Assembly (NCBI GenBank): GCA_000708835.1
Contig: DF237614.1
Location: 1-46,880, forward strand
Direction of reading: 5' to 3'
DNA: 46,880 nucleotides
Source: Klebsormidium nitens
Taxonomy: Eukaryota; Plantae; Klebsormidiophyceae
The notes under the pieces were generated by a model, which searched no databases, had not been told where the DNA came from, and saw only the letters and a program-made list of their open reading frames with translations. The translations under genes and the position numbers were made by a program. Positions 14,801 to 46,880 of this stretch are shown piece by piece; the stretch's first letter is position 1; every line of letters begins with the position of its first letter.

Positions 14801-17800
14801 GCTGCGCCTTTGCATTCCTATTGACATCTTACAATCTCGCTTAAAGTAGTAGTGGGTCGAGTCAATCTGCTGATGCATATAGATGCTGATTTTGAGTCGT
14901 AGAATCGCTGCCCATTAAGCCAACCCGCTTGTCTTCCTAAAACGGAAGAGTCTAAAATCTCATTGAGGAAAGTTGATTTTGGACTTCGCGCCAAGTGCAC
15001 CAGTCTAGCTGACTAACTTCTGTATTTTGTGTCTTTCTACCGAGATGCAAGGAGGCCGGCCTGCAAGTTCCTACGTAGGGCCTAGGACTAGGACCGTACT
15101 AAGACCACTGCAAGAAGAAGACTTTCACCACCCTCTGCTGACATCGTATCGTTGTATGAGCAGATGTGAAAAACGAGAACCTGGAAGCTGGGATCCGTGC
15201 GATGGCCGCTGTTTCGCTGGGCTTACTGGCGACCAGTGCTGGGGTGTCGGCATCCGTGAGCTTCATGGTGAGGAGAAACTATTGTTGGTTACTGAAGATA
15301 TAGGATAGGAGACTTGGGTTGGCATTCGAGTTCCCGCAAGGGCCTGTGGCAAAAAGTGCAAAGCACGGGCAATCTGCCACAGCTCTAAGATGAGACCAAT
15401 ATTCTCAAGGTTTGTTTGCTCGTTGCTTTTTCTGCTTCCTTTTTGCAAAAGGAACGAGCTCCTGGTATATTCGGCACAGCCAGACACGTGAGTTAAGCAG
15501 AGAGACTGCAAGGGACACTTATTGCTCTTCTCAATCCGGGGGGCGAGAAGTACAGTTTCGTTATCATAAGAGGATGATGCAACGGATTTGGCAGTATTCC
15601 ATTCGTCCATGGCAGCGTTTCATTGGTCCATGGCAGGATTCCGTTGGTCTATCGCAGGGTTCCTTTGGTTTATGCGGCGACTCTTGTAAACCAGAACCTT
15701 AGACCGACGTCGAAATGGCCAAACAAATCGCTAGAACCGTGCTTGCAGACCGCCGCCGCCAGCATCACGACATTCGCTGCGCGCCAGAACCTCCAAGCGC
15801 CGTTGCCAGCGCCCTACCTGGATGCGAGCTCGGGCCTCTCATTTTCGCTGTTCAACTGGCCCTGTCCCTTCGACGGTCTCATACCGACAGCTTCAGCTCT
15901 CGACAACCTACTGCCGGGAAACAGCGGCTCCCCAGAGCCACAGGCGCCGTTTGAAAGCCGCACGCTCACTTGGGACAATGGAAGCGTTCCGGTCCGCCTG
16001 ACGGTGCTCAGTCGAGCAACGGTGGAGACGGTTCCGTTCAATGCGAGCGTGGAGGCGGATCCGAGTATGTACGGCGCGGAACTGACGGTGAACGCGGACA
16101 GGCGGGCTCTTCTTGCAGAAAATGACGGGTATGTCTGCTTACTTCGTTACCTCTTGGGCTCGGATCTCGCCCTGAACATGTCTCGGAATCATGTGACCTC
16201 AGAACGCCTACCCCTGGTTTCTTGTGGCCGGCGGCCAGGTACAGCGTCTTCATCTGCAGTGTGACGTTGATATGTCTTTGAAAGTCTTCGCTGTGCCTTG
16301 CAGATTGCGCGCCCTGGTCCGAGCAGTCTTTTGGGTTCTCACCATCCTAGTTTTGATGGTGCTCTTCCACTCCAGCAAAGCGCTCGCAGCCTGGTGTTTG
16401 AGGCGCCACATCGCTCCCTCCCTCTTCGTCTTTCCCGGGCCCGAGCTCATCTTTCTGACCTTTGCAACCCTGCCGCTGACGCACCTGTGCGTCAGAGCGC
16501 TGACAGGTACGGCGTTCTGAACAACTTTTCTGCAGCCGGGCGTTCCCTTCTGAACACCTTTTCCGCAGCAATCTGGTTCCGCTCTGTACACCTTTTCCGC
16601 AGCAAGCCAATCCGCTAGAGTAGTACTACTCCCCAACGGACTTGGGGCTTTGATTCAGCGCCAGTGCGGTCTAGGATTCTGTCCTGGTTATGAGCACACC
16701 TCCTTCGAAGAGATTTGCTAGTATCCGAACGGGTTGCCTGGGGTGAACGATCTTTCGAAAGTGTAACCCTTTCTTTCTCGCCTTCTGTCTGCATCTACTG
16801 AAAGTAATATGCAGCCGTCAGTTTAGATTCCAGTCTGTTGGACCACATGTCGCGCGATTTTGTAGGATCTTCGACAAGTTTGCACTGCGCGCCACAGAGT
16901 TCGGGGTTTGGCTGCCCGACCAGCGGGTTAGTGACTACGCCAGTACCAGAAACGAAGGCCCGTGCGAAATCACTTAACCGATTGCTTCTGATTGTGTGTG
17001 CGTCAGCCTCTGAAATGACATGAATCGTTGATTGAAAGATGATAAAGATGAATCATGCGCATTGCGTAATTGGTCGTTGTACAGGTGGAACGATGGCGGC
17101 CATCGTGCTTGCATCGGTTGTTCTCACCTGCATCGCCGCCCACCTCGTCTTCCTTACCGGTATCCTTTGGATACATGTCGTGAATGTGAGTAAACCTTCG
17201 CTCACTAGTTAAGTTACAGCTATCATGTGGCTACCCAATGGTGAGCCGCTTAAAGCTTTCCAAGCGAACAGAACAGTCCGTCACGGGTTCAGGTTTCGTT
17301 CAGCTTTCTTTCAGCACACAGAAGCTGGCCGGCGGTTGTGACACCTTAAACGGATAGACGAACAGGTGTGGTCACGCTTGATACGCTCCGCTTGCGAAGA
17401 GGCCCCCATGTTTTCAAAAGAATCGTAGCGCACTTTCGGCGCTACCTCGTCTTCCTAAGTTCATTGTCCAAAAGGCAGGATACTCCCGACCTTCGTCTGA
17501 CGCTCTCTGCTCCATCCCCGTCTCAGAGCAAGTCGGTTGCGTTCGTCAGAGAGGACTCCGATGACGACACCCGCTCTTGCTTCCGCGCCCCGGTGCACGG
17601 CACGTGGCAGGTTGTTGACCCCTCGGAAGGGAATCTGTTCGTGGCAAAGTACGGCTTCTTCTATACCGACTTTGCCGGACGCCCCTCGAAATTGCACTTG
17701 AACAACAGAAGCTTCCGCACTGATTTAGAATCAGTTCAACTCGATCACAACGACAGGGACCTGGCCGTCGAAAGTGCCAATGCCAAGATGGATCCGCCAG

Positions 17801-31133: not shown

Positions 31134-31509
31134 TGTCCCTCTTGTGTGTGTTTTTCCCTTGAGCAGCCACAAATTGCAGTGAGAAAACCGCTCTGGTCGA
31201 TCTGTCGTTGGTCTTGCACGGGGGCTTAATCTAAAAGAACCTTGCACTCCTTGAGACATGTGATTCTCCCTTGAAGTATACCATTACCGTAGTCTACCGT
31301 TACCAGATGACGCCAGACACGACCGTCCGCGACACATATGACGATCCAGATATTTTACAAACTTTCCCGCGCAAACCTCTGCATTGTGCCTAAGGGGAGT
31401 CCTGCTCACTTTCATTTTTTCGGCATAGAGACAGACGCAGAGAAGCAAGATGGTGGGGATCTACGCCGTCAGGTCCGGGGAGGTGCCATGCCATATGAAT
31501 GTCATGCTA

Positions 31510-31564
31510 CAGCCTGTTCAGAATAAAATGGCACACTCGCCATAGTACTCTGCCGTATCTACTG
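31510..31564 (-). mobile_element. 55-bp internally deleted relic of the Fanzor element
   Basis: 31510-31560 matches the Fanzor right end (46/51 vs the reverse complement of 39293-39343), followed by ACTG; TA on both sides (31508-09, 31565-66). Confidence 0.85.
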
Positions 31565-31633
31565 TAGGATCATGTTTTGACTATCAGGTAACGTGAGAGT
31601 ACTGACAAAAATCCTCTCATATATCAGAAAAGT

Positions 31634-33944
31634 ATGCCCACTGCATCATACAAAGCTACTACCGTTTGTGGTGGAGTAGTATTCATATCGTTTTTGGCAA
31701 CCATGCTCTACATGGTCGGGTGGTCCCCCAGCAGCTCCGCACGGAGTCCTCTCGCGGCGAGTCTAGAGCTGGAAACGCTCTCCGGAATCGAAGATGAGAT
31801 CAAGAACGTGGTCGATGGCTCTATGAGAGCGTGCGTGACGGCCGGCCGGGCCATAGCTTCCGGTTTAGAAGGCAATGAAGACACTTGGGACGCCATCCAC
31901 GCAAGAAGCCCCGCCCTCTGGGGAAACCTTGCAGGGCTCCAGGTACTTCACCAGCGCCGGATTCCAGTCCGCGAGCAATCTGTCCCTTTCTTTCGTCCGG
32001 ACAGGTAACAGCATCATAGAATACACACGAAACGCGACGGATGCACCCAACATCACTGGTTACGAGGTATCATACGATTCAGGCAGAGCATCGCCCATCC
32101 CTACGAACTTCATCGCAACCCCACCCCTACAATACAGAGAATGGTACGTGAGAGCGGTCGCGCAGCAGGACAGAGCGATCGTCACGCCCTTGCTGAGCGT
32201 GCTGGGCTATCCCACCGTCATCGTCAGCTACGCGATTTCCGACAGTACGGATACGCTGAGAGGAGCGGTCAACTTGGGTCTGGACGTCAGCTTCGTCCTG
32301 TCGACCCTGGCGAGCAGGAATCGCACGGATTTCTCCACAACGTACGTGACAATACGTCAGAGTGGCGATCTGCTCCCCCTGACGCAGAGCCCTAACTTCA
32401 CGCAATTCGTGAACGCCTACAACTCGACCGACCCCTTTGTCTCCGAAAGCGCCCGCAAGCTCGGAAACGCACTCTATGACGAGAAGGATTACAACCTGCA
32501 GATACGCCTGCGGGGTCGCAGGTATTTCGTGGGAGTGAAGAAGCTTCTGAACAACGTCGATCTTACGATGGTAGTCCTCATGCCGAGGGACTACTTCTTC
32601 GCTCGGGTGGACCACGACAGGACCGTGACCATCGGGGTCTTCTGCGCGGCCATGGCCCTCTGGGCTGTGTTCGCGCTGGTAGTCAGTATTGCCTTCTTCA
32701 GGTTGCGGAAGCGGGAGCGGATCCTACGGGCCGCCGCCAAACACGAGGAAGAACAGCATAAGCTCAAGCAGATTCTGTTGACCAGGCTGAGCCACGAGTT
32801 GCGGACGCCGATGACCGTAGTCATGGGTTTGCTGGAAGAGCTCCAGAACGATTGTAAACAAGAGGACCTCATGGAGAACGTGAACCTGTTGAAGAAGACG
32901 AGCATCGATATGTTGCACCTTTTAGACGGAATTCTCGTCCTCGCGAAGAACGAAGCCGGAAAGACAAACGTGGAGAAGCAACTGTTCGACCTGAAGGCCG
33001 AGCTGAAGGCCGCTTTAGCAGCCATAGCCCCTCTCCTAACACCCCAAGGAGTGACCACGAGCCTCAAGTACGATGAGCACATGGCAAAGGAATTCGTGGG
33101 TGACCGCCGCGTGTTGCGGCAGATCCTGGACAACCTCCTAAACAATGCGGCAAAGTTCACGGACCACGGGCGTATCGAGATCGAGGTCGCGGGGAATCCA
33201 GTGAAAACGGACGATAGGTACCTCGTAGAGATCATGGTGAGAGACACGGGCATAGGTATCGATCCTTCTCGACGAGAAGCCATCTTCGAAGAATTCGTGC
33301 AGGCCAACGATCGTATGAAAACTCTTTACGGAGGTAGCGGTCTCGGTCTGAGCATAGTGCGTTCGCTTTGCAGACTATTGGGCGGGGACATCACCGTGGA
33401 TTCCTCGTCGAGCCAGGGTACCTGCTTCCGATTTTCAGTGTCACTTGGCGTCCCATCCGCGTCCATCAGGAGGTCCGAGGTGGTGAGCGAGACCATGAAG
33501 AACGACGACTCTCCGTTGGAAGGCATCCGCGTGTTGGTGGCGGAGGATACACGACTCATTAGTAAAATCCTGGAGCGCTTCCTGCTAAAAGAGGGGGCTA
33601 GAGCCACGATGTCGGAAGACGGAAAGGCGGCTCTGGACATCTATTGCGAGCGGCCGTTTGACTACGACATCATCCTCATGGATTTGCAGATGCCTCGTTT
33701 GGATGGTTACGAGGCTACAAGGCAGATCCGTAAGCTGGAAACGGACGGTGCCCTCCCGGGGCGGGTCCCCATCGTTGCGTTGACCGCCCACGCCATGGAG
33801 AACGATGCGATCAAGTGCCGTGAGGTGGGAATGAATGATTACATCCGGAAGCCGATTTCCCGCGAGACCATGTTGTCCACTATCCTCAGCCTCGCCCGAT
33901 CTAAGCGGCTCAGCAGTTCGCGTTCGAATATTTTGAATCCTTGA
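31634..33944 (+). pseudogene. Intronless hybrid histidine kinase, AHK1-like (TM, sensor, TM, HisKA, HATPase, receiver), with one +1 frameshift at GGGG 31920-31923
   Basis: H-box LSHELRTPM, N-box LLNNAAKFT, G1 RDTGIGI, G2 GGSGLGL, receiver AEDT..ILMDLQMPRLDG..KPI. Removing one G joins ORFs 31634 and 31875 into ~769 aa. This could be a sequencing error. Confidence 0.9.
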
Positions 33945-34000
33945 AACGCAGTCCGTGGATACCCACTGCTTTTTTACTTCTTACGCAACGCACAAGCATG

Positions 34001-34546
34001 TCACGTAGTAGGTACAAGCTCGCCTGAAGACTTCTTCTGGACGCAGTCTTCCGGCACCCAATGCTTCTTAGTACCACCACCGTAAACCTCAGCATAGCCT
34101 TCTTCGATGCAGATGGTTTGCAGAGACTTTGTATCGTCAGGTGAGAGGTAGATATCTCCAAGACACCTCCCGTACTTATCCCAACCCTTCGCATCCATCC
34201 AGATCAACGCCACATTCTCTCTGAAAAGCTTGTTGATATCTTTCCTCGCATATTTTCCGTCTATCTCAAACACCCCAGGTGCCACGAGAGCGAGCATACG
34301 GTTGCGCGCCTTTATGGCCCACGCTTTCACCACGGGGTCTTTTGCATTCATCTCTGGTGCGTCGATGCCGAGCAGTCGCACGATAATCTTGTGGACGTCA
34401 TTGTTCTGGAATGGAAAGACGACCGTACAAGTATCGAGGTCGTGCATACCTACAATTCGCGCCCACGCTTGCAATCCCGCCAACGAGAATAACTTTGTAG
34501 AATCATCATACTTGGAGAGAAGCTGCGTAGCTTGCTCCTTGTCCAT
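34001..34546 (-). CDS. Staphylococcal nuclease (SNase/thermonuclease)-like protein
   Basis: HDLDT, RLLGIDAPE, DKYGR and EEGYA retain the SNase catalytic Asp/Arg/Glu pattern. Confidence 0.9.
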   Translation of the reverse strand: MDKEQATQLLSKYDDSTKLFSLAGLQAWARIVGMHDLDTCTVVFPFQNNDVHKIIVRLLGIDAPEMNAKDPVVKAWAIKARNRMLALVAPGVFEIDGKYARKDINKLFRENVALIWMDAKGWDKYGRCLGDIYLSPDDTKSLQTICIEEGYAEVYGGGTKKHWVPEDCVQKKSSGELVPTT

Positions 34547-34593
34547 ATCGTATCAAGTTCTCGAGAAAAGAAAACGAACCCCACGCACGTTCA

Positions 34594-35943
34594 CTAAAAG
34601 TCCTCTCCGGTGAACGGATTTCGCTTCAATTTTGGGTATGGATGCATGTGTCTCTCCGGTTCCCTCAAGTAAGGCTTGAGGAGCTGCTGCTCGTGTGGCG
34701 TATTCGAGTACTGCAAGCCCGTCCTCTGCACCACCAGCCATCGCCACAGACACTCTCTCCAGGTATCAAAGTCTGCATCTCTCCTGGCTAGGAGGAATCG
34801 CTCTATGAGTTTCCTCACCTCGTCCGATGCATCAGCAAGGAATCGATCGGCGTTCCCTCTCCGTACCTTCCATTCTTGCGGTGTGATGTTGCCGACGCTC
34901 GCCGGATCGATGCCGTACAATCGGAGCAATCTCGCGCAGACCGACCGGATCCTCCGATAGTGATTGTCCGTGCTCTTCTCTCTATCATGAACCAGGTCCT
35001 GCAGCTGTCTATGGTAAGTGGGAAGGGAGTCGATGAATGCTTGTGCCTCCACTGGATCCTGTAGGAGAGCCCATATGTGACGGTAGGGACGAGTCTGTAG
35101 CTCCAGTCGCAGTCTGTGTAGATTTTCGGATCTGTTTAAGAGGAAACGCGCGTACCCATCGACCTGGTCGTTATGCTGCCGGATGAGCAGTGCCAGATGC
35201 TCCATTTCCCGGGAGTCATCCGCTCTGACGATCGTGTCAGGGAGATGTTGCCGCATCGAGAATTGTCCCAACACAGGTAGGGTGGCCTCTACAAAGTTTC
35301 TGTAGCCTCTGATCCGCAACAGGTCATTGGTGAGGAAGTCCGCTATAGCCTGCCGTAGACCCTCTATCCTTTCTAGGTACCCATCATCTAGGCTGCTCAG
35401 GTCGTCCAAGAGGGACCTGAGTCCGGGCCTAGCCACCCGGAGGAGCTGCTTCCACACGGCCCTCATCGGCAGCTGGAGATTGCGGTCGTGGAAACGGTCG
35501 GGTTGACCCCACTGCCGTCGATCGAGATACAGATCCGTAAGGACCTCTCTCATGGGTGCCAAGGTGGTCACCACGTAACCTACGACCGCCCGAGCTCCGG
35601 GGTCGAAGAGGGCGATGGCCGTCGACTGATCAATGTCCCCAAGTCCACCCGCTTGAAGAAAGGGTCTGAGACGATTCCAGAGGGCCGCCGCGGTCGATCT
35701 CTTCCGGTCGTCCTGGCTCCGATCGGGCTCCTTGGCCTGCGCAGCGGGCTTGCACTCCGCACGCAATCGCTCTATCTCGCGGTACGACTCCCGGCCCAGG
35801 TCGGTGAGTCGGTTCCTGCCGTTCGATCGAAAGATCCGAGAGACTTCGGACGCCACCGCGCTCTGGCGTGCGTTCAAGCCAGCCCAGATGGCTAACCTCG
35901 CGTTCTCGTTCAGGTTCGAGAGCGTCAGTCTCCTGGCGTTCAT
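34594..35943 (-). CDS. 449-aa protein, possible N-terminal F-box-like motif
   Basis: Long open frame; LSNLNENARLAIWAGLNARQSAVASEVSRIFR resembles F-box spacing; the rest is helical and unrecognised. Confidence 0.65.
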   Translation of the reverse strand: MNARRLTLSNLNENARLAIWAGLNARQSAVASEVSRIFRSNGRNRLTDLGRESYREIERLRAECKPAAQAKEPDRSQDDRKRSTAAALWNRLRPFLQAGGLGDIDQSTAIALFDPGARAVVGYVVTTLAPMREVLTDLYLDRRQWGQPDRFHDRNLQLPMRAVWKQLLRVARPGLRSLLDDLSSLDDGYLERIEGLRQAIADFLTNDLLRIRGYRNFVEATLPVLGQFSMRQHLPDTIVRADDSREMEHLALLIRQHNDQVDGYARFLLNRSENLHRLRLELQTRPYRHIWALLQDPVEAQAFIDSLPTYHRQLQDLVHDREKSTDNHYRRIRSVCARLLRLYGIDPASVGNITPQEWKVRRGNADRFLADASDEVRKLIERFLLARRDADFDTWRECLWRWLVVQRTGLQYSNTPHEQQLLKPYLREPERHMHPYPKLKRNPFTGEDF

Positions 35944-36016
35944 CTTCTTTGATACTATCCTTGGAAAACATTAGGCGTCGGACCATCGAATATTCTCAAA
36001 CATTGTGTATGCAAAG

Positions 36017-36858
36017 ATGGCTTCTCTCCTCGATTGCGCAGCCATCTCGTGGGCTGCATACACCGGCCTCGCGGGAATAAACAGAGAGCTGCCTGACTCG
36101 TGCAGAGACCTACTGCTCGGTTACGAGATCCGGGATGTGGCGGAGGGTGTCGTGATGGCGAAGAGGGGCAAGAGCGTCGTCCTCGCATTCAGGGGCACCG
36201 TGAGCTGGAGAGACATCGGAAGCGACCTCGAGCTATGGAGGAGGGAGCCCTGTAGGAAGATAACGAAGGTGGATGGCGCGTTGGTCCACGATGGTTTCGC
36301 CGACGCCTACCGCCGAGTCGCATGCAGTTGCATAGCCATCCTCGAGCATACCTTGGGAAAAGACGATCCATGACGGTGACGGGTCATTCAATGGGGGCAG
36401 TCGAGGCCCAGCTCTGCGCTCTGCACGTGGCGAGTGCGCTCGACATCAAGGACGTCCGTTGCGTGACCTTTGGTTCGCCAGGAGTGGGCAACGCAGCCTT
36501 CGTATCGGCCTTCTCTTCGGTGGTAAAGGAAAGCGTGAGGGTCGCCCACGTGCTCGATCCTATACCCAAGATCCTGCCTGCTGCTTATTTCGTGCAGACG
36601 CCCGAGCTTCAATCGGTGAAGGGGGAAGCCACGGTGAGCAGAGTGGCGAGCTCTGGCTTTTTGAGTCAACTATGGGGTAAGTTGCTACAGCTCGTGGAGG
36701 GGGACATGCGCTACCACAGGCTGGCCACGTACATCGCGTGTCTGCGTGAAGAATCGGCTACCGAACGTGCACCTCAGGATGTAAAGTCTGACGAGACCGA
36801 AGAAGAATACCACGCAGATTCGACGGGCATGCCGGAAGGCTCTCCGACGGACGCTTGA
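36017..36858 (+). pseudogene. Class 3 lipase with a -1 frameshift near 36367-36372
   Basis: LAFRGT, VHDGF, GHSMG nucleophile elbow, TFGSPGVGN, DPIP and the His in YHRL, split over two overlapping frames. Confidence 0.88.
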
Positions 36859-36956
36859 GCGGACTTTTCGCGGTTTCGTCGTTTGTCCTTCTTCGATATT
36901 ACAGTCTGTCCAGAGTAAATGGCACACCTTTTCTTTCAGCGATCGAACCGTCCGAG

Positions 36957-37232
36957 CTCCGAGAGCTCCTAGATCACCACGTGGTGGCCACATGCGTCTG
37001 AACTCCAAGAGCTTCTAGTTCGCCACGTGGTGGCAACAGGCGTCCGAACTCTGAGGGCTTCTAGTTCGCCACGTGGTGACCACAGGCGTCCGAACTCCGA
37101 GGGCTTCTAGTTCGCCACGTGGTGGCCACAGGCGTCCGAACTCCGAGGGCTTCTAGTTCGCCACGTGGTGGCCACAGGCGTCCGAACTCCGAGGGCTTCT
37201 TGTTCGCCACGTGGTGGCCACAGGCGTCCGAA
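36957..37232. repeat. Six tandem 46-bp units, each with a CCACGTGG G-box
   Basis: Consensus CTCCGAGGGCTTCTAGTTCGCCACGTGGTGGCCACAGGCGTCCGAA; units start at 36957, 37003, 37049, 37095, 37141 and 37187. Confidence 0.97.
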
Positions 37233-37279
37233 CGACTTCAGTCCGAAAGGTTCTTCACTTCGGACGACCTCTCTCGGAG

Positions 37280-37285
37280 TATAAA
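37280..37285 (+). promoter_or_regulatory. Putative TATA box of Fanzor 1
   Basis: GAGTATAAATG is conserved in both elements (42825-42830), ~40 bp upstream of the likely ATG. Confidence 0.5.
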
Positions 37286-37320
37286 TGCAAGAAAGATGTC
37301 ATTTTCACAAACATTCCCAG

Positions 37321-39219
37321 ATGGAGGAAGGAGCAGATGACTGCGAGAAGGCGCAGAGGAAGCGTCCAGATATCACTCTCCGAAGAGCACTCCGGAAGGA
37401 CAAGGAGACATCCGTGGTCCAGACGGGATGGAAGTTCCTCTGCCAGGAACGCGGCATAAGAGATCGGATCGAGGAGATCATCCCGGAGGTGACCCGCATC
37501 CGAGTCGAGACATGCCTCCTGCTCAATCTCCACTTCATCCGCCTCCTGGATGAGGGACGGCCCATACCCGTCATCGACCAGAACTTGGTCGGACGTGCTA
37601 TGCAGTGTACGTACTCCAAGAATCCGCAAGCGGACCCAGACCTCCACGAGACATTCGTCCACCACTACCTCCCCCTCTGCCCCAACCGTCCGAACAACGG
37701 CTGTCTCCCTCGCATCACCAACGTCCTCCTGGACCTCCGCAACCAGCTCCTCAGCAACATCAAGAATCACGTCGCGGTCCTCTTCCAGTCACGACACCGG
37801 GCCTTCATGAAGCTACTCCTCCGAGAAGCAGCTCCTGAGGTGCCGTTCTTCGGGGACGCGGACGAGGATCTGGAGTCATGCACCCGGCTGCTGACGACCG
37901 CCACGTTGTGGCGTCCGAACGAGAGCGTTCGAGAGCTGCTGCCGGAGTATCCTCGCATCTACGGAAAGATCCCCGAGGCAGCCATCGAGTGCCTGCAAGA
38001 TCTGGTCGACTCCGTCAGGCCGGAGGTTGGGCCGCGGCCTGCGGCGCCCCAGAGCAGACCTCACCTCTACATGCCCTGGATGAGGACCATCAGCGAGGAG
38101 TTCTCGGACCGCGACCTGTGGTCATTCTCCCTCGTGCCTCATGCCTCCTTCTCTGCACCCTTCATCGCGATCACTCCCACCACATGGCCCGAGCTGCAGC
38201 CCAAGACCGGCAAGAGAAAGGCTCCCGGAGAGCTCCGCGATGCTTTTCCCTCCATCGGACGGCTGGAGAGCGGTGGGAAGACCTTCGCAGACCGGATCAC
38301 CACGGACGGAGTGTCTACAAGCGTGTATTTCTTGGTGGAGAAGAGGACGCCCCCTCCGGAGGACAGAGTGGTCCACATCCACCCCGAGCAGCGCGTGGTG
38401 GGATTGGATCCAGGAAAGCACCCAGACTTCCTCACCGGCATTGCCGTGACCGGAGATTGGGACGGAATCGAGCGCCAGGAAGAGATCATCGGTCTGGGAA
38501 CCCGGGACTTCTACCACCGAGCGGGTTTCAAGAAGCGGACGTCCCTCATGCACTCCTGGATGTCCAGAGACCTGGATGTAGCAGCCTTCAACAAGGATGC
38601 TCCTTCGGGGAACACCGTGAGCCTGGAGGACTTCGGGAAGAGGGTGACCTTCGTCTGTGCGAACCTGTACGTCCTAGTACGCTTTCACACCGCGAGGAGG
38701 GTCCGGAAGCTGAGACGGCGAGTGACGATCCAGAGGCAGATCGAGGTGGACAGAGCTTGCAGGGCGATCACGGCAGGGAAGAAGACCGTGGTGGCTTTCG
38801 GAGCAGCACAGGTGTGGGCGGGCAGGACCAAGAGGCAGTGTGGGCCATGCGAGTCGGTGAAGAGGCGCCTCAGCAGCCACCACAAAGCGACGGTGGTCAT
38901 GATAGATGAGTTCAGGACAAGCCAGGTCTGCAGCACGTGCCACTCGGACGTCGACAAGTTCGCCGTGCTCAAGAGGCAGCGGGTGATGGAGGATGGACTC
39001 CCGACGGTGACCGAAGGAGGGCGTCGCAAGGACGATGACGAGGACGGAGGAGGGAGGACAAGCTACAAGACGTGCCACAACGTGCGAGCGTGTACGAACC
39101 CGCTCTGTCGCATGGTGTGGAATAGAGACGTCAACGCAGCTCGTAACATAGCTTGGATCTGTATGAGCATAGTCAGAGGCGAGGGCAGGCCAGCGGAGTT
39201 CACGAGAGCAGGAATGTGA
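37321..39219 (+). CDS. Fanzor: Fanzor1-type RNA-guided endonuclease (TnpB-like), ~632 aa
   Basis: RuvC-I VVGLDPG, RuvC-II position VAFG with relocated Glu in IDEFRTS, CSTC..CTNPLC zinc finger, RuvC-III NRDVNAARNI, basic N-terminal KRKR-like segment. The upstream ATG at 37285 overlaps the TATA motif. Confidence 0.95.
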   Translation: MEEGADDCEKAQRKRPDITLRRALRKDKETSVVQTGWKFLCQERGIRDRIEEIIPEVTRIRVETCLLLNLHFIRLLDEGRPIPVIDQNLVGRAMQCTYSKNPQADPDLHETFVHHYLPLCPNRPNNGCLPRITNVLLDLRNQLLSNIKNHVAVLFQSRHRAFMKLLLREAAPEVPFFGDADEDLESCTRLLTTATLWRPNESVRELLPEYPRIYGKIPEAAIECLQDLVDSVRPEVGPRPAAPQSRPHLYMPWMRTISEEFSDRDLWSFSLVPHASFSAPFIAITPTTWPELQPKTGKRKAPGELRDAFPSIGRLESGGKTFADRITTDGVSTSVYFLVEKRTPPPEDRVVHIHPEQRVVGLDPGKHPDFLTGIAVTGDWDGIERQEEIIGLGTRDFYHRAGFKKRTSLMHSWMSRDLDVAAFNKDAPSGNTVSLEDFGKRVTFVCANLYVLVRFHTARRVRKLRRRVTIQRQIEVDRACRAITAGKKTVVAFGAAQVWAGRTKRQCGPCESVKRRLSSHHKATVVMIDEFRTSQVCSTCHSDVDKFAVLKRQRVMEDGLPTVTEGGRRKDDDEDGGGRTSYKTCHNVRACTNPLCRMVWNRDVNAARNIAWICMSIVRGEGRPAEFTRAGM

Positions 39220-39243
39220 GGATGACTGAGAATTAGTCGAAAG

Positions 39244-39343
39244 ACATAGCTGCCTAGAAACGAGTTCATCTAGGCACTTCGGTGAGAATCCGAGATACGG
39301 CTGGGTACTGTGGCGAGTGTGCCATTTTACTCTGAACAGACTG
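39244..39343 (+). ncRNA. Conserved 3' part of the Fanzor omega/fRNA scaffold (guide expected immediately 3')
   Basis: 100 nt, 96% identical to 44788-44887; hairpin TGCCTAGA/TCTAGGCA, cUUCGg motif, GAGT(G/A)..TACTC stem. The 5' boundary is unknown. Confidence 0.8.
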
Positions 39344-39400
39344 TATCCCTCGAGAGTATCAGACCCCGTCCTCGGGGCAAATCTGGGCACGTATAAGGAC

Positions 39401-40567
39401 ATGCCTATAGGGCTCGCCATATGGAGAGACCCCACTAATCGCTTCGTGTGCAAGTCGGAGCCCCTGGGTACTGGTGGGAGCAAGAGAGTGTACCGAGCAT
39501 TCGACAGAAAGACGGGCCGCGAGGTCGCTTGGAGCAGGGCTCCATTGCCGTCAGAGGGTACGAGGGAGACCACAGACATACTCGACGAGATCGATATGAT
39601 GAAATCGCTGGACCACCCTAACATCGTGAAGTTGATCAGCTTCTGGATAGAGAAGCGGACGAACGAGGTGATCCTCATAACCGATTTATATCACGGATCT
39701 CTGGATGCCTACGTTCGCAAGCATGGCAAGCAGGAACCGTGCGTGATACGAAAGTGGACTATCCAGATCTGCGAGGCAATAGAGTATCTGCACTGTCACT
39801 TTGAGAATCCGATCGCTCACCGCGACATAAAGTGCGCCAATATATTCGTGAACAACTACACGGGCGACGTCGCCCTAGGAGACTTAGGCTTCGCGACGAT
39901 GATGAGCAGGTCCAAGTCCGATCGTTCCGTCCTCGGTACGGCTCACTTCATCGCACCCGAGGTCCTCAGCGGCCGCGCCAGCCGCAAGGGCGACATCTAC
40001 TCGCTGGGCATGACGCTGATCGAGATGGCTACGCTGAAGAAGCCCTACTCCATGATCAAGAATCAGAGTCAGCTGTACATGCTGGTCCTGGACGGTGCCT
40101 CTCCGGACGAACTCGTCTTCATAAAGAACAAGAATCTTCGGGCACTCGTGGAAAAGTGCATCAGGCCCTTAGAGACGAGACCTTCGATCGGGGAGGTGCT
40201 GAGAGAACCTTTCATCACGGACTGGTTCCCACTAAAAGATTTCGCAGATCGAGACGTGTCAAAGATACTATCTAGCACTTCGAGTATACGAGTGATGGCA
40301 AAGTGCGGCGCAAAGACCGCATCCGGTAAGACCTGTCGTAGGACCGTGTCTTCCGGTCATAAGCGGTGCTATCAACACAAGCGGGCCAAGTCCGGCAGAA
40401 GAGCAGTGCCAAAGAGAATGACCATGAGAGCTCACCCTGCCAACGCCGACCGCATCCATCGGCTGACCGAGAAGCTTCTGAGAAAGGGTCTCACCAGAGC
40501 GGAGATGAAGGAGCTGAAGCGGCGCGTGAGGTCTAGGGACGAGATGATGAGATCGTTCTGGCTCTGA
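39401..40567 (+). CDS. WNK: WNK-family Ser/Thr kinase with C-terminal CCCH zinc-ribbon/basic extension
   Basis: Lys in the Gly-loop (LGTGGSKRVYRAFD), VAWS at the usual VAIK position, HRDIKCANIFVN, GDLG, GTAHFIAPE; intronless; tail C..KT.SG.TC.R.V...C.QH. Confidence 0.88.
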   Translation: MPIGLAIWRDPTNRFVCKSEPLGTGGSKRVYRAFDRKTGREVAWSRAPLPSEGTRETTDILDEIDMMKSLDHPNIVKLISFWIEKRTNEVILITDLYHGSLDAYVRKHGKQEPCVIRKWTIQICEAIEYLHCHFENPIAHRDIKCANIFVNNYTGDVALGDLGFATMMSRSKSDRSVLGTAHFIAPEVLSGRASRKGDIYSLGMTLIEMATLKKPYSMIKNQSQLYMLVLDGASPDELVFIKNKNLRALVEKCIRPLETRPSIGEVLREPFITDWFPLKDFADRDVSKILSSTSSIRVMAKCGAKTASGKTCRRTVSSGHKRCYQHKRAKSGRRAVPKRMTMRAHPANADRIHRLTEKLLRKGLTRAEMKELKRRVRSRDEMMRSFWL

Positions 40568-40613
40568 AACCCGCCTCGCCTATTCCTGCGCCGTCATGTC
40601 GCAAACTATATCC

Positions 40614-42590
40614 CTATCCCGACCTGGTGTTAAGGTCTGAGGCATCGGCCCTAGGGGTTCTATCCCGCGGCGAAAGAAAGGGGGGTGGTAGATCATGCAA
40701 TGCGTCATCCTGCACGAATTTTATCTTGGTAACCCCATCTGCCAACAGATCTAGCTCGGCGAGTGCCTTCATGACGGTGAGCATCAGCCGGTTCTTATTG
40801 GCCAGTCTGACGTCGACTTGCTGAAAATTCGTGCGATGCGACACGAGAAAAGTTAGTAGTATCTTTTCGTTATCAAACTGCTTCATGTTCAACGTCACCT
40901 TTGGGTACCATTGCTCTGGGTTCGCTTGAAGAAAGCGCAAGATGCACGCTCTCATCTCTTCGATCTTCTTCTGGGGGGTGCCCCAGCCCAGCGCCAGATC
41001 GATGAGCTCGATCTGATCGGGGGACCTGTAGTAGTTGCTGATGACCTTCAGAGCCAGTTGATTGTTGCTGTAGTATACCTTGCTGTTGTCCGCTGCTAGG
41101 AGGATCGTGGACAGCAGCTGCATCTCTTCCACCACGTAAGTTTGCCCGTCCACCCTGATGATATCCGAAACGTCAAAGGGGTGCGTAACAAAGAGGAAGA
41201 TTATGGACTCGAATACGGTCTTGCAGGTGTTGCCAAAGACGAATAGGGAGGCCAGGAAGGATCCCGACGTGACGACGAGCAGCTTCTGCACGTTGACGTT
41301 GAGCACGAAGAGGCACATAAGGACGACGATAACTCCCACCACCCAATCCAACAGCCTGCTGAGGGATCTTATCGCAGTCTTCGTGTCGCTCAACGTCAGA
41401 GCCAATGCCTTCCGCTCGCGCACTACGTTGATGAGCCAGTTTTCGAACGATTCGCACGTCACCACGCCCTCCTCGCTCTCAAAGGCCTGGAAAGCCCGCT
41501 CGGCGTCGTTCTCCTCCAAAAAATGGAACAGGTCATGAATCACCATATGGTGTCTCCCCTCTGGTACCACATTCTTGAAGATGTCCCTCGCGGCGTCCCG
41601 TCCGTGCTCCTCGCTCCGGACGTCCCTCTGCTGCTGCGTGGAGATGGTCGTGATCTTGGTGCTGCGCACGAAGCGCATGATGCTCTGGAACGTCCGAACG
41701 CCGAGTTGCCCCTGAGAGAGCGTAGCCAGGACTCCCACCTCCTCGTGGGGTTCGCCGCGTATGCCGGTCGTCGCTGAGTCTACCTCGATCCTTGAAGATC
41801 TATTGAGCATGTAAGCAGGTATGGAGAGTCGTTCTATGACGTAGTGGTCGAACATGGCGTCCCTGATCCTCTCGAAGTAGGCCTTTCTATGAAATGCGTT
41901 CGCGAGGATCTTGATGAATATCACTTTTCCCGCCATCACGAGGGTGGCGATCTGAGTGCACACTAGTATCTGATTCACCTTGACTGGTATCTTGCCCACG
42001 ATCTTCCTCCTCCCGTTGAAGAGGAGCGTCCAGACGCACAGGACTTGCAGGCACCAGATCACGTTCCAGGCGGACCTTCGCACGCCGTAAGCCACATACA
42101 GTATCTTTCCGTTGTCCTTGAAGATCATCTGGAGTAAGAAGATCATCGTGTATACCAGAACCCTCCCTATGAGCCTGCCCGAGAGCAGCGTCAGGAGCAG
42201 GACGGTCCACTTCCAGACCTCCAGCTCCGAGATGGTGGACCTAGAGAAGAAGAGCAGGGAGATCACGATCTGCGTTACCAAGTATCCACCCAGCGCCATC
42301 TGCCCATACGCGAGCAATCTCCTCGAGAGACGGGTCTCGCGTACCGTGGATGGGGATCGAGGATTCTCCTCGTCCTCCTCACCCTCCTCATCCTCCGAGA
42401 GGGCTCCCAAGATCGACGTCTTTTGTACCTCGCCGGTCTTTATGGCGTCCAAGACCGCGGAGTGTGGTACGCTGTGCATGTTTCCCTGCAGCGGTCCGCT
42501 CACCAAAACCGTGGGTTCGAAGTCACGAGACTTGGTCATCGACGCCCGCCGCCCGAATTTCAGGGAAGCGCTTCGCTTGTAGTCCTGCAT
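40614..42590 (-). CDS. MSL: MscS-like mechanosensitive channel, plant MSL4-10 type (~658 aa)
   Basis: Multiple TM segments; FVFGNTCKTVFESIIFLFVTHPFDVSD, VVEEMQLLST and KVYYSN..ISNYYRSPD; intronless. The start is taken at MQDYK because the longer ORF begins inside the transposon. Confidence 0.92.
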   Translation of the reverse strand: MQDYKRSASLKFGRRASMTKSRDFEPTVLVSGPLQGNMHSVPHSAVLDAIKTGEVQKTSILGALSEDEEGEEDEENPRSPSTVRETRLSRRLLAYGQMALGGYLVTQIVISLLFFSRSTISELEVWKWTVLLLTLLSGRLIGRVLVYTMIFLLQMIFKDNGKILYVAYGVRRSAWNVIWCLQVLCVWTLLFNGRRKIVGKIPVKVNQILVCTQIATLVMAGKVIFIKILANAFHRKAYFERIRDAMFDHYVIERLSIPAYMLNRSSRIEVDSATTGIRGEPHEEVGVLATLSQGQLGVRTFQSIMRFVRSTKITTISTQQQRDVRSEEHGRDAARDIFKNVVPEGRHHMVIHDLFHFLEENDAERAFQAFESEEGVVTCESFENWLINVVRERKALALTLSDTKTAIRSLSRLLDWVVGVIVVLMCLFVLNVNVQKLLVVTSGSFLASLFVFGNTCKTVFESIIFLFVTHPFDVSDIIRVDGQTYVVEEMQLLSTILLAADNSKVYYSNNQLALKVISNYYRSPDQIELIDLALGWGTPQKKIEEMRACILRFLQANPEQWYPKVTLNMKQFDNEKILLTFLVSHRTNFQQVDVRLANKNRLMLTVMKALAELDLLADGVTKIKFVQDDALHDLPPPFLSPRDRTPRADASDLNTRSG

Positions 42591-42865
42591 CTCCTCATTT
42601 TCCACCAGAAAATTACCGTCTGTCCAGAGTAAAATGGCACACCTTTTTTTTCCAGCGATCGGACCGTCCGAGCTCCGAGAGCGTCTGAACTTCAAAAGGC
42701 CTCTGGGTTGCCACATAGTGGCTACAGGTATCCAAAGTCCGAGAGCGTCTAGTTCGCCAAGTGGTGGCCACGGGCGTCCGAACGACTTCAGCCCGAAAGG
42801 ACCTTCGGACAACCCCTCACGGAGTATAAATGTCAGAAAGATGTCATTTCCACAAACATTCCCAG

Positions 42866-44770
42866 ATGGACGAAGGGGCAAATGACTCCGAGACGGCGAA
42901 GAGGAAGCGTCCAGATATCACTCTCCGAAGAGCACTCAGGAAGGACAAGGAGACATCCGTGGTTCAGACGGGATGGAAGTTCCTCTGTCAAGATCTCGGC
43001 ATAAGAGATCGGATCGAGGAGATCATCCCGGAGGTGACTCGCATCCGAGTCGAGACTTGCCTCCTGCTCAACCTCCACTTCATCCGCCTTCTGAATGACG
43101 GACGGCCCATACCCGTCATCGACCAGAACTTGGTCGGACGTGCTATGCAGTGTACGTACTCCAAGAATCCGCAAGCAGACCCAGACCTCCACGAGACATT
43201 CGCCCACCACTACCTCCCCCTCTGCACCAATCGTCCGAACAACGGCTGCCTCCCTCGTATCACCAACGTCCTCCTGGACCTCCGCAACCAGCTCCTTAGC
43301 AACATCAAGAATCATATCGCGGTCCTCTTCCAGTCAAGACACAGGGCCTTCATGAAGCTACTCCTCCGAGAGGCTTCTCCAGATGTGCCGTTCTTTGGGG
43401 ACACGGACGAGGATCTGGAGTCGTGCACCCGGCTGCTGACGACCGCAACGTTGTGGCGTCCGAACGAGAGCGTCCAAGAGCTGCTCCCGGAGTATCCTCG
43501 TATCGACGGCAGGATTCCAGAGGCAGCCATCGAGCACCTGCAGGATCTCGTGGAGTCCGTCAGGCCGCAGGTCGGGCCGCTGCCGGCAGCACCTCAGAGC
43601 AGACCTCACCTCTACATGCCCTGGATGAGGATCATCAGCGAGGAGTTCTCGGACCGCGTGCTGCGGTCTTTCTCCCTCGTGCCTCACGCCTCCTTCTCTG
43701 CACCTTTCATCGCCATCACCCCTACCACGTGGCCCGAGCTGCAGCCAAAGAGCGGCAAGAGAAAGGCTCCGGGAGTGCTCCGCGATGCTTTTCCCTCCAT
43801 CGGACGGCTGGAGAGCGGTGGGAAGAGATTCGCGGACCGGATCACCACGGATGGAGTGTCCGCTAGTGTGTACTTCTTGGTGGAGAAGAGGACGCCCTCT
43901 CCGCAAGACCGAGCGGTGCATATTCACCCCAAGCAGCGCGTGGTGGGGCTGGACCCAGGAAAGCACCCTGACTTCCTCACGGGCATCGCCGTGACGGGCG
44001 ACTGGGATGGCATCGCGCATCAGGAGGAGGTCATCGGCCTGGGAACCCGGGATTTCTACCACCGAGCAGGATTCGAGAAGCGGACGTCCCTCATGCACTC
44101 CTGGATGTCCAGAGACCTGGACGTGGCAGCCTTCAACAAAGATGCTCCTCCCGGGAACACCGTGAGCCTGGAGGAGTTCGGGAAGAGGGTGAGCTTCGTT
44201 ATGGCGAGCTTGTACGACCTGGTACGCTTTCATACAGCGAGGAGGGTCCGAAAGCTGAGGCGGAGAGTGACGATCAAGAGACAGATCGAGGTGGACAGAG
44301 CGTGCAAGAGGATCACGGCAGGGAAGAAGACCGTGGTGGCTTTCGGGGCCGCAGAGGTGTGGGCGGGCAGGACCAAGAGGCAGTGTGGGCCATGCGAGTC
44401 GGTGAAGAGACGACTCAGCAGCCATCACGGGGCGACGGTGGTCATGATAGACGAGTTCAGGACGAGCCAGGTGTGCAGCACGTGCCACTCGGACGTAGGG
44501 AAATTCGCCGTGCTGAAGAGGCAGCGGGTGATGGAGGATGGACTCCCGACGGTGACCGAAGGAGGGCGTCGTGAGGACGAGGACGAGGAAGGAGGAGGGA
44601 GGACGAGCTACAAGACGTGCCACAACGTGCGAGCGTGTACTAACCCGCTATGTCGCATTGTGTGGAACAGAGACGTCAATGCAGCTCGCAACATAGCTTG
44701 GATCTGTATGAGCATAGCGAGAGGCGAGGACAGGCCAGCAGGGTTCACGAGAGCAGGAGTCTGGCAATGA
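42866..44770 (+). CDS. Fanzor: Fanzor1-type endonuclease, second copy, ~634 aa
   Basis: Same catalytic motifs intact; about 57 amino-acid differences from copy 1 by manual count (~91% identity). Confidence 0.95.
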   Translation: MDEGANDSETAKRKRPDITLRRALRKDKETSVVQTGWKFLCQDLGIRDRIEEIIPEVTRIRVETCLLLNLHFIRLLNDGRPIPVIDQNLVGRAMQCTYSKNPQADPDLHETFAHHYLPLCTNRPNNGCLPRITNVLLDLRNQLLSNIKNHIAVLFQSRHRAFMKLLLREASPDVPFFGDTDEDLESCTRLLTTATLWRPNESVQELLPEYPRIDGRIPEAAIEHLQDLVESVRPQVGPLPAAPQSRPHLYMPWMRIISEEFSDRVLRSFSLVPHASFSAPFIAITPTTWPELQPKSGKRKAPGVLRDAFPSIGRLESGGKRFADRITTDGVSASVYFLVEKRTPSPQDRAVHIHPKQRVVGLDPGKHPDFLTGIAVTGDWDGIAHQEEVIGLGTRDFYHRAGFEKRTSLMHSWMSRDLDVAAFNKDAPPGNTVSLEEFGKRVSFVMASLYDLVRFHTARRVRKLRRRVTIKRQIEVDRACKRITAGKKTVVAFGAAEVWAGRTKRQCGPCESVKRRLSSHHGATVVMIDEFRTSQVCSTCHSDVGKFAVLKRQRVMEDGLPTVTEGGRREDEDEEGGGRTSYKTCHNVRACTNPLCRIVWNRDVNAARNIAWICMSIARGEDRPAGFTRAGVWQ

Positions 44771-44787
44771 GAGATATATAGTTCAAT

Positions 44788-44887
44788 ACATAGCTGCCTA
44801 GAAACGTGTTCATCTAGGCACTTCGGTGAGAATCCGAGATACGGCAGGGTACTGTGGCGAGTATGCAATTTTACTCTGAACAGACTG
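44788..44887 (+). ncRNA. Conserved 3' part of the Fanzor omega/fRNA scaffold, copy 2
   Basis: Same hairpins as copy 1 (44795-44802/44813-44820); ends at the TIR. Confidence 0.8.
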
Positions 44888-44914
44888 TATCACGGGAATT
44901 AGCATAATCGAGCG

Positions 44915-45394
44915 ATGGAGGCGATAAACCCTCTCTACGGGCAAGCTTTCGGAGCTGCCCAGAAGCATCTCCCCGGCGCCCTCTCTCAGCTGGCGGATAC
45001 CACCGGCATGTACAGCGACGGTCTATTGGACTTTCTAAACGGACCCACGGCCGCTCAGATCAAGAAATTCTTCATAGTGCTACGCATAGTGGCCACGGCC
45101 GCACTGCTCTACTACGCCTACTGGTTTAGCAACAAGTTGAGGTCGATTTCCCTCGAGAGGCAGTATGAATCGGAGGAGAGGAGGCAGACGGAGGTGGCGA
45201 GGGCTCTCGCGGAAAACACCCTCTGGTTGGGGTCTCAGAGAGGGGTTATCCCCCTCATCTGGGACATATGGATGACGCTCCTCTTCACCTTTGTAATCGT
45301 ATATGGCGTGAAGCAAGTGCTGGAGAAGCGCCTCGGCGAGTATGTCATGCGGCAGATCGCCGAACAGGCCGCCGCCGTGCTCAAGAAGAAGTGA
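44915..45394 (+). CDS. Hypothetical membrane protein (2 TM)
   Basis: 159 aa; hydrophobic FFIVLRIVATAALLYYAYWF and IWMTLLFTFVIVYGV. Confidence 0.7.
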   Translation: MEAINPLYGQAFGAAQKHLPGALSQLADTTGMYSDGLLDFLNGPTAAQIKKFFIVLRIVATAALLYYAYWFSNKLRSISLERQYESEERRQTEVARALAENTLWLGSQRGVIPLIWDIWMTLLFTFVIVYGVKQVLEKRLGEYVMRQIAEQAAAVLKKK

Positions 45395-45442
45395 GCGACT
45401 ATATAGGAAAGGCAAGAACATGAGAAGCATCATGTCTACACC

Positions 45443-45838
45443 ATGGACGACGAGACGGTCGTGGAGACTGGCTTCCTGTACGCAGCCCGGGCGCCCGGAT
45501 CTACGATAATGAAAGTCGGAATGTCCAAACAGCGGGACCCCAGCTTATACATAGCGAGACGGTACGCATTCGTTCTAGAGCCATTCGCCATCATGGGAGT
45601 GGCCGACGCCAACATGGCAGAAAAAATCGCATTCCACAAGCTGAAGCCATGGCACGTCACGCACGAGATCTTCGAGGCACTAGATTGGGATTTGGTCCAA
45701 GCGATATTCGAACAGACTGCTTACCTAGTGGCTGACAGAAACCGTTGCTTAGAGTATTGCAGCGAACACGGTATACCATTGGTGAGAGAGGGCAGGAGTA
45801 CGAAGACGATACATCATTTCGAAGATTTCGCACTCTGA
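45443..45838 (+). CDS. T5orf172/GIY-YIG-like domain protein
   Basis: GFLY..MKVGMS..DP..AEK..H.KLK..V.HEIF pattern. Confidence 0.7.
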   Translation: MDDETVVETGFLYAARAPGSTIMKVGMSKQRDPSLYIARRYAFVLEPFAIMGVADANMAEKIAFHKLKPWHVTHEIFEALDWDLVQAIFEQTAYLVADRNRCLEYCSEHGIPLVREGRSTKTIHHFEDFAL

Positions 45839-45847
45839 ATGCACATT

Positions 45848-46333
45848 TCAACGTTTGATGCCTACTGCCCTAGAACCATCCGGCAACTCTATCTCTCTTA
45901 CTACATCAGGCGGCTTTGTATCCTCCACTCGGACTACGCTAGGTGGTTCTACGACGGGTCCGGATACTGGTACTACTATCATCGGAGTCGTATCGTCTCT
46001 GGTACAATGTCCTACGATGATCGCGACTGCAATCAGCATCTCTAACAAACCTATACCTATGCACCCGTACACGAAGAGTCTGCCGGGTTGCCGAGTGGAT
46101 CCCTCCGTCAGGAATCCTGTCACCAGGAGCAAGAACTTTTGACAGCCGAATCTGACGTCCGAGTTGTACTCCAGACAGTCGTCCCAGAAAGGAGATAGAA
46201 TGAAATAGAGGATGTCTAAGACGATAGGAACCAAGTAAGACAGGGGAACCTCGTTCCCCAGGGTGGACACCACCACCAACATGAGGCTCGCTACTACCGC
46301 GTCCACTGCGTAGAGCTCGGACGCCAGCGTCAT
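45848..46333 (-). CDS. Hypothetical membrane protein (~3 TM)
   Basis: Open frame with three hydrophobic segments; ATG 6 bp after the RNR stop. Confidence 0.65.
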   Translation of the reverse strand: MTLASELYAVDAVVASLMLVVVSTLGNEVPLSYLVPIVLDILYFILSPFWDDCLEYNSDVRFGCQKFLLLVTGFLTEGSTRQPGRLFVYGCIGIGLLEMLIAVAIIVGHCTRDDTTPMIVVPVSGPVVEPPSVVRVEDTKPPDVVREIELPDGSRAVGIKR

Positions 46334-46338
46334 CCTCC

Positions 46339-46880
46339 TCAAAAGTCGTCCTCTACGAAATCGCCGTACGTCAGGCCTCCCTTCTTCCCCTTGTTCAGCG
46401 TCTCGATCACACCAGCCTTTTGATAAGAGCTCACGTGCGACTCGAACATGTTATTCTTGGACGTCAGGGAGATTAGTTCCATAAACCCGAAAGGGTTCTT
46501 GCTGCCGTTGTGGGTCTCGTAACCGAGGCTATGGAGCAAGCGGTCCGCCACGCACTCGATGTATGTGGACATTAACTTCTGGTTCATCCCAATGAGGGAA
46601 ACAGGGAGTGCGTCGCAAGCGAATTCCTTCTCTATCTCCACAGCCCCCTTCACGATCTCCAGGACCCTCTCGGACGACAGCTTCCCCACCAGCAGGTCGC
46701 GGTACAGGTGGCAGGCAAAGTCCGTATGGAGCGCCTCGTCCTTGGCGATGAGCTCGTTGGAAAATGTCAGCCCCGGCAGCAGGTTCTTGCTCTTCAGCCA
46801 GTAGATGGCGCAGAAGGAGCTGCCAAAAAGGATGCCCTCAACGCACGCAAACGCGACTAGCCTCTCAGCAAACGAGTCAG
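46339..46880 (-). CDS. RNR2: Ribonucleotide reductase small subunit (class Ia beta), 5' part outside the window
   Basis: [72 protein letters not shown]; intronless. Confidence 0.96.

Follow-up and report, generated by a model that had tools for sequence, protein, structure and literature searches.

The closest described relatives of the elements analysed here are Fanzor1 nucleases of algae, fungi and viruses. KnFNuc is an intronless Fanzor1 from the alga Klebsormidium nitens that is present in five copies, co-purifies with an RNA derived from the 3' non-coding stretch next to the right end, uses a TTA target-adjacent motif (TAM), nicks both strands in a focused manner and can edit human cells with an efficiency of up to 2% (Jiang et al. 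2023, Sci Adv, PMC10530073). Fanzor1 genes also occur in Mariner-type elements, some of which have no transposase and are flanked by TA duplications (Bao & Jurka 2013, PMC3627910). In an endogenous giant virus of Chlamydomonas reinhardtii, Fanzor-only copies and end fragments of such families exist, with relatives in other algal endogenous viruses (10.1101/2024.09.03.611062). We analysed the whole K. nitens scaffold DF237614.1 (46,880 nt, referred to as the window), which carries two elements of 2.3-2.4 kb, element A (36902-39343) and element B (42616-44887). We judge it likely that A and B are two diverged, intact, non-autonomous IS630/Tc1/mariner-type transposons within giant-virus-derived DNA, each encoding a Fanzor1 that very probably belongs to the KnFNuc family. 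Systems of this kind have been described before, and very probably so has this family.

KnFNuc agrees with A and B in its host, its Fanzor1 type, the absence of introns, the five copies, the rearranged RuvC-II glutamate and a 3' RNA region, which is predicted for A and B, and its TTA motif agrees with their T+TA left flanks (PMC10530073). The article frames the enzyme as a plant or algal Fanzor, and the available part of its text mentions neither a giant-virus setting nor Tc1/mariner ends nor a TA duplication. We regard it as highly likely that the family of A and B is KnFNuc. The first-pass annotation of this DNA had cautioned that Fanzors of this host lineage might already be described, and the caution was well placed, as the family has very probably been characterised already (PMC10530073). 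If the families are the same, the nuclease, the RNA and the TAM are already on record; the window adds a viral origin for the Fanzor elements of K. nitens, a contrast between TTA and GTA at the two ends, orphan right-end modules, and corrections to the start codon and the guide register. These additions help the annotation of algal genomes and thinking on the natural roles of Fanzors, and open no new question.

The other described systems share parts of this organisation. ESv-1 of Ectocarpus siliculosus virus 1 resembles A and B in layout, being virus-borne, TA-flanked, 2639 bp long and present in two copies, with a single Fanzor1 between inverted repeats (PMC3627910). However, its protein has 693 amino acids (aa) and an unrelated N-terminus, its virus infects a brown alga, and the repeat strings of A and B are absent from the supplement of that paper; with a different protein and no shared repeat strings, ESv-1 was rejected as a member of the same family. 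The oomycete element PUl-4 likewise combines Mariner repeats and Fanzor1 without a transposase, but in a different host (PMC3627910). The C. reinhardtii Fanzor1 families A-C are, like A and B, of IS630/Tc1/mariner type, and they lie in the endogenous giant virus of a green alga. Their full-length copies carry a transposase, and copies are >99% identical, indicating recent activity, whereas no transposase was found in A and B, which are ~10% apart (10.1101/2024.09.03.611062). SpuFz1 from Spizellomyces punctatus (PDB 8GKH and 9CEU-9CEZ) gave the best profile and fold match and has the same catalytic layout, but it is only ~17% identical, fungal, and found in another transposon context. IS605 TnpB resembles the model considered below in its right-flank guide, left-flank TAM, vacant-site cleavage and recombinational restoration, as set out in PMC10690162 and PMC13565253. 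Unlike the proposed system, IS605 excises precisely and makes no duplication, whereas the partner of A and B would be a DDE enzyme that makes TA duplications.

Both elements were bounded by inverted repeats of ~27 nt (29 nt including TA) with 86-95% complementarity; the left repeat of B had one terminal mismatch and that of A a 1-nt deletion. The terminal four bases are presumably like those of Tc1-like ends. The same layout was found on two more K. nitens scaffolds, DF237727.1 (L001) and DF238013.1 (L002), and on six metagenome or SRA contigs (the environmental relatives; environmental contigs carry labels between L003 and L010), and because of this recurrence a chance origin of the architecture is excluded. 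Insertion-site statistics were based on 8 independent insertions with defined ends, and TA flanked both sides in all eight; the left ends of L003 and L009 were not definable. The left repeat was conserved over ~27 nt across lineages with saturated synonymous sites, and the DNA just inside it was unalignable. Pfam searches revealed no transposase domain in any open reading frame (ORF) on either strand of either element, and no transposase was present among the called genes of ~180 kb of related loci. Taken from their sequence, A and B would be IS630/Tc1/mariner-type elements and, at best, non-autonomous members. The first-pass annotation had described two complete, transposase-free Fanzor elements with terminal inverted repeats and TA target-site duplications, in which the right repeat doubles as the 3' end of the RNA scaffold. 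Each of these statements was confirmed at the level of sequence; as to the last, the conserved ~107 nt of the predicted scaffold runs through the right repeat. The features are as follows.

36900-36901, unstranded: left TA duplication of A; a T at 36899 precedes it (TTA).
36902-36927, forward strand: left terminal inverted repeat of A; conserved over ~27 nt across lineages, after which conservation collapses.
36949-37233, forward strand: 46-bp subterminal tandem repeat of A; 6.2 copies with a CCACGTGG palindrome in each unit.
37277-37285, forward strand: TATA-like motif of A, shared with B, L004, L006 and L008; putative promoter.
37321-39219, forward strand: Fanzor1 coding sequence of A, intact; 632 aa plus stop (the mechanical ORF starts at 37285).
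39239-39345, forward strand: conserved 3' RNA scaffold of A (putatively omega/fRNA-like); three stem-loops are predicted, and the right repeat and TA lie within it.
39317-39343, forward strand: right terminal inverted repeat of A.
39344-39345, unstranded: right TA duplication of A; the junction reads GTA.
39346-39365, forward strand: predicted guide-encoding flank of A, unique in the window; a length of 14-20 nt would be expected from the literature.
42614-42615, unstranded: left TA duplication of B; a T precedes it (TTA).
42616-42642, forward strand: left terminal inverted repeat of B, with one terminal mismatch.
42681-42783, forward strand: about two degenerate 46-bp repeat units of B.
42822-42830, forward strand: TATA-like motif of B.
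42866-44770, forward strand: Fanzor1 coding sequence of B, intact; 634 aa plus stop (the mechanical ORF starts at 42830).
44783-44889, forward strand: conserved 3' RNA scaffold of B (predicted); includes the right repeat and TA.
44861-44887, forward strand: right terminal inverted repeat of B.
44888-44889, unstranded: right TA duplication of B.
44890-44909, forward strand: flank of B predicted to encode its guide; it occurs once in the window.
31508-31631, reverse strand: orphan right-end or scaffold-like module of a diverged relative, without an ORF; ends in TA.
31592-46880, unstranded: neighbourhood of probable viral derivation, syntenic with intronless virus-like contigs.

The uninterrupted ORFs of A and B (37285-39219 and 42830-44770) encode proteins with 91% identity. 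Their residues, numbered on the 632-aa protein of A, were compared in an alignment of 87 relatives, from which a protein profile was also built. In this alignment D363 was invariant, E530, G494 and the RuvC-III RD motif R602-D603 were kept in at least 90% of the relatives, and the zinc-ribbon cysteines C537, C540, C591 and C596 (CxxC...CxxC), which lie between RuvC-II and RuvC-III, were conserved. RuvC-II is rearranged in the manner described for Fanzors, with G494 at the canonical glutamate position and E530 six residues before C537, the first cysteine of the zinc finger; the catalytic glutamate and the RuvC-III aspartate aligned with their SpuFz1 counterparts. The sole Pfam domain was PF07282, the Cas12f1-like TNB zinc ribbon, which passed its gathering score with an E value of about 7e-7. 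The profile matched SpuFz1 (E 4e-64), PpFz1 (3e-51) and GtFz1 (8e-47) over nearly the full length and the mimivirus Fanzor2 far more weakly (1e-11). An AlphaFold model based on the same alignment reached a pLDDT of 89.9 and a pTM of 0.87, and its top Foldseek matches were SpuFz entries with template modelling (TM) scores of 0.66-0.73, compared with at most 0.3 for Cas12f, TnpB and Fanzor2. The results demonstrate that A and B encode true Fanzor1 proteins with intact fold and catalytic residues, and the intact RuvC triad with a relocated glutamate, as first annotated, was found at D363, E530 and D603, with G494 at the canonical site. The ratio of nonsynonymous to synonymous substitution rates (dN/dS) was 0.15 between A and B, at a dS of 0.30, and 0.14-0.32 across the family; these low values therefore indicate that the protein is under purifying selection. 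A and B are old and are not recent copies of one another.

Because all relatives begin at the equivalent of the thirteenth codon of the ORF, translation probably starts there (37321 in A, 42866 in B) and not at the first ATG, which overlaps the TATA motif. A GAGTATAAA motif located 36-65 nt upstream of the likely start in A, B, L004, L006 and L008 is a plausible promoter element. The conserved promoter of the first-pass annotation is retained as a putative one in that the motif is common to A, B and three environmental relatives. Near the N-terminus, a conserved basic stretch of RKRPD type resembles nuclear localisation signals reported for Fanzors. Long antisense or out-of-frame ORFs within the elements had no Pfam domain, were not conserved between A and B, and were rejected as genes.

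The coding sequences are followed by a non-coding 3' tail of ~125 nt in A and 117 nt in B, of which the last ~107 nt form the conserved, predicted scaffold. From just past the stop codon to the right TA, A and B were 96% identical; A and L004 were 94% identical over this stretch, though the L004 protein is only 70% identical and synonymous sites are saturated. RNAalifold predicted three stem-loops, the last of which would pair the extreme end of the right repeat and TA with a conserved upstream segment. In this arrangement 96% of cells were paired, compared with 30-42% when the partners were slid by one to three columns. In L005 and in the orphan module of the window, another hairpin takes the place of the first one, which lends the scaffold extra support; Rfam contained no match to it. 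The case for the predicted RNA scaffold is built on conservation and the literature more than on covariation. The identity of 94-96% and the consistent three-stem-loop fold agree with the conserved 3' scaffold of the first-pass annotation, with covariation remaining weak.

A covariance model of this 3' region recovered all copies and, in addition, orphan right-end modules without an ORF at 31508-31631 (-) in the window, 15829-15908 (-) in L003 and 1818-1900 (-) in L005. The module in the window keeps the last stem-loop, the repeat and TA, has a different first hairpin, and carries a 29-nt insert in place of the second hairpin. They may represent remnants, or modules that provide guides on their own. 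We also considered a composite element of 10 kb in L005 with a second repeat as its boundary, and rejected it because that repeat is an inverted orphan right end.

The base preceding the left TA was T in six of the eight independent insertions (P about 0.004 in a binomial test assuming 25% T), and the right junction of the element read GTA in every copy. With T at this position in six of eight, the empty site is therefore expected to consist of TTA, the TAM on record, and the right flank. Solved Fanzor complexes assign the 5' duplication to the TAM and the 3' duplication to the scaffold, with guides of 14-15 nt (PMC13565253, a 2026 review). Because the 3' duplication belongs to the scaffold in these complexes, the guides should start at 39346 in A and 44890 in B, and the 3' TA more probably forms part of the scaffold than of the guide. 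Neither guide had another match in the window. Two claims of the first-pass annotation were thereby modified. Its reading of the guide from the right-end flank is compatible with that flank, but the start should fall two bases later than it had stated, after the TA (PMC13565253). Its proposal that each copy is aimed at its own empty allele fits the TTA flanks in six of eight insertions and the KnFNuc TAM, but no empty site was found.

The setting of the elements points to a virus. The neighbourhood at 31.6-46.9 kb comprises a hybrid histidine kinase, an SNase, a 449-aa ORF, a lipase, a WNK-like kinase, an MscS channel and a fragment of the ribonucleotide reductase (RNR) small chain. Two parts of it, 31.6-34.5 kb (hybrid histidine kinase and SNase) and 39.4-40.2 kb (WNK-like kinase), had 72-76% DNA identity to L010, an intronless, gene-dense SRA contig, and the lipase left of A, the ORF at 45.4-45.8 kb and the RNR fragment had homologues on related contigs. 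The closest Fanzor relatives (57-74% protein identity) lay on JGI metagenome contigs of 41-128 kb, which carry a D5 primase-helicase, an A22-type resolvase, PCNA, RNR, a deoxynucleoside kinase (dNK) and a UvrD helicase. A search of the window for hallmark genes (capsid, PolB, packaging ATPase, D5 primase and VLTF3) found none, and only the RNR small-chain fragment was present. Core genes of nucleocytoplasmic large DNA viruses (NCLDV), of phycodnavirus type, have been reported in the assembly of K. nitens, then named K. flaccidum (PMC5294986). A giant-virus derivation of ~31.6-46.9 kb is thus supported at the level of sequence, and the viral insertion in which the first-pass annotation had placed the elements is borne out for this interval by synteny with intronless virus-like contigs. 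The virus concerned would be algal, because K. nitens is a charophyte alga.

K. nitens holds the A and B copies together with one copy each on L001 and L002, amounting to five ORF pieces, two of them on L001, and no further Fanzor of K. nitens came up in protein searches. The copy on L001 is broken by a partial internal duplication, a frame change and a stop, and that on L002 by a single stop. The K. nitens copies differ by 10-12%.

With these results, a mechanism can be outlined for A and B as transposase-free Fanzor1 transposons. As the literature on the KnFNuc family describes, the 3' transcript would bind the protein and continue into the flank, whose 14-20 nt after the right TA would serve as the guide. 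The resulting Fanzor1-RNA complex would target its own insertion site wherever that site is still empty and consists of T, TA and the right flank. By analogy with IS605 TnpB, the break at the empty site would be repaired from the occupied genome, and the element would be copied in by homing, for example between co-replicating related viral genomes. The first T of the TAM may distinguish the two states of a site, with TTA in an empty site and GTA at the element's own junction, so that occupied sites would be spared; the left flank with TA equals the published TAM and the own junction does not, which offers a simple sequence-level account of self-sparing. Ordinary transposition would need a Tc1/mariner-type transposase acting in trans, and the conserved left repeat would imply that one exists. 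Homing into empty sites combined with mobilisation in trans is a plausible reading of the locus; the literature surveyed contained no demonstration of homing for any Fanzor. The most extended form of the proposal holds that KnFNuc is a giant-virus-borne homing element, that the single T of the TTA TAM alone tells an empty site from its own GTA junction, that the element spreads into related viral genomes during co-replication, and that orphan modules such as 31508-31631 add guides in trans. In this full form we regard it as doubtful.

Several observations weigh against the transposon-and-homing reading. The ~10% difference between A and B gives no sign of recent movement, and two of the eight insertions have CTA instead of TTA. 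No exact empty site was found: L010 also lacks the lipase and the 449-aa ORF, and was rejected as an exact empty allele given that these two neighbouring genes are missing too, and a search with the flanking kinase retrieved, as the nearest K. nitens paralogue, a gene with only 51% identity. Scans with the repeat pattern for a transposase-bearing partner gave 0 matches in IMG/VR and 0 in a metagenome collection that evidently lacks the JGI samples containing the relatives, so that the second blank carries little weight. The search for a transposase-bearing element with the same terminal repeats, which the first-pass annotation had suggested as a check, was thus negative within a limited amount of sequence, which took in only part of the K. 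nitens assembly. For the scaffold, covariation was weak, with 2 compensatory pairs and 14 of 500 shuffles scoring as well, the sequences being too alike, and the single-sequence fold had a z-score of only -1.7. The assignment to KnFNuc was made from the published description of that family and is a probable one.

The activity of the elements in their present host bears on a different question from their nature. Two of the four K. nitens elements (L001 and L002) are broken, the guides would find no close second copy of the flanking genes in K. nitens, the divergence of 10-12% among the K. nitens copies shows no recent burst, and an orphan end fragment lies nearby. A and B may accordingly be inert relics that were active in the free virus and are now silent passengers of an endogenised fragment, selection having predated integration and their intactness being residual. 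We give this reading some weight, though less than even. Opposed to it, A and B retain open frames of 632-634 codons along with every catalytic residue, the two repeats and the scaffold, and a recombinant K. nitens Fanzor1 has been reported to be catalytically active. As the relic reading concerns present activity in the host, it is compatible with A and B being non-autonomous transposons of viral origin. The nuclease might instead be kept mainly as a viral weapon for cutting competing related viruses or host DNA, with upkeep of the transposon secondary. Virions of the Chlamydomonas endogenous giant virus contain its Fanzor proteins, for which the authors suggest a role in inter-virus competition (10.1101/2024.09.03.611062); strong purifying selection on the protein across viral contigs and orphan scaffold modules that could supply extra guides would also suit such a role. 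Yet both guides are the flank of the element's own insertion site and match nothing else in the window, as expected of a self-serving mobile element, and we consider the weapon unlikely. Cutting an element-free rival at this site would be the same molecular event as homing, so that the two readings differ only in the beneficiary.

Homing might also be the sole remaining route, the transposase of the family being extinct and the repeats being kept only through the place of the right one in the RNA scaffold. The sequence searched yielded no transposase with these ends, and the right repeat lies within the conserved scaffold; both speak for this explanation. However, the left repeat lies outside the 3' RNA and is nevertheless conserved over ~27 nt next to inner DNA that cannot be aligned, and the transposase searches extended over limited sequence and only part of the K. 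nitens assembly. Moreover, the eight insertions are all at different sites, each with a TA duplication, which is the mark of transposase-mediated insertion and not of homing. We find homing alone quite improbable, and favour non-autonomous transposons that would be mobilised in trans and could in addition home.

The subterminal regions of the elements contained further repeats. In A, a 46-bp tandem array of 6.2 units, each with the CCACGTGG palindrome, lies between the left repeat and the putative promoter, and B has about two degenerate units there. Arrays in this position were also present at 282-458 in L002 and 9591-9930 in L005, those of other lineages being unrelated 79-bp and 60-bp arrays. 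The arrays might be binding sites for a transposase or a transcription factor. The K. nitens scaffold L002 has two copies of the left repeat, at 187-204 and 592-609, ~400 bp apart and each directly after TTA, which suggests that its left end is nested or has been duplicated. Of the environmental copies, that of L006 (9502-11994) has one frameshift in its Fanzor, and the L003 copy (9293-11290) has a whole ORF with a 3' scaffold cut off before the right repeat.

In the viral neighbourhood, the RNR small-chain fragment (46342-46878, -; Pfam E 2e-43) runs off the scaffold end and is 56% identical to the L004 RNR. Compared with L010 (3131-3169), the window has an extra 4.8 kb (34547-39378) between the SNase and the kinase, consisting of the 449-aa ORF, which has no Pfam match, the lipase and element A; the same interval in L010 measures ~60 bp. 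Element B occupies a divergent intergenic gap of ~50 bp (42590-42615 and 44888-44917). The MscS-channel gene (-) has its first ATG 22 bp away and ORF 44915-45394 its ATG 25 bp away, so that the element separates both genes from their former upstream DNA. IMG/VR contained only one distant Fanzor (21% identity), with no adjacent transposase, and no relative of the histidine kinase. The left part of the window (1-10 kb) is unlike the virus-like right part, with a guanine-cytosine (GC) content of 26-64%, several tandem arrays and an ORF resembling leucine-rich repeats (LRR; 2593-3825, -), and may be host DNA or repeats. The ORF of element A did not turn up as an annotated protein. The public model KFL_006650100 (730 aa, span 42866-45394) splices most of Fanzor B onto ORF 44915-45394 and looks like an annotation chimera.

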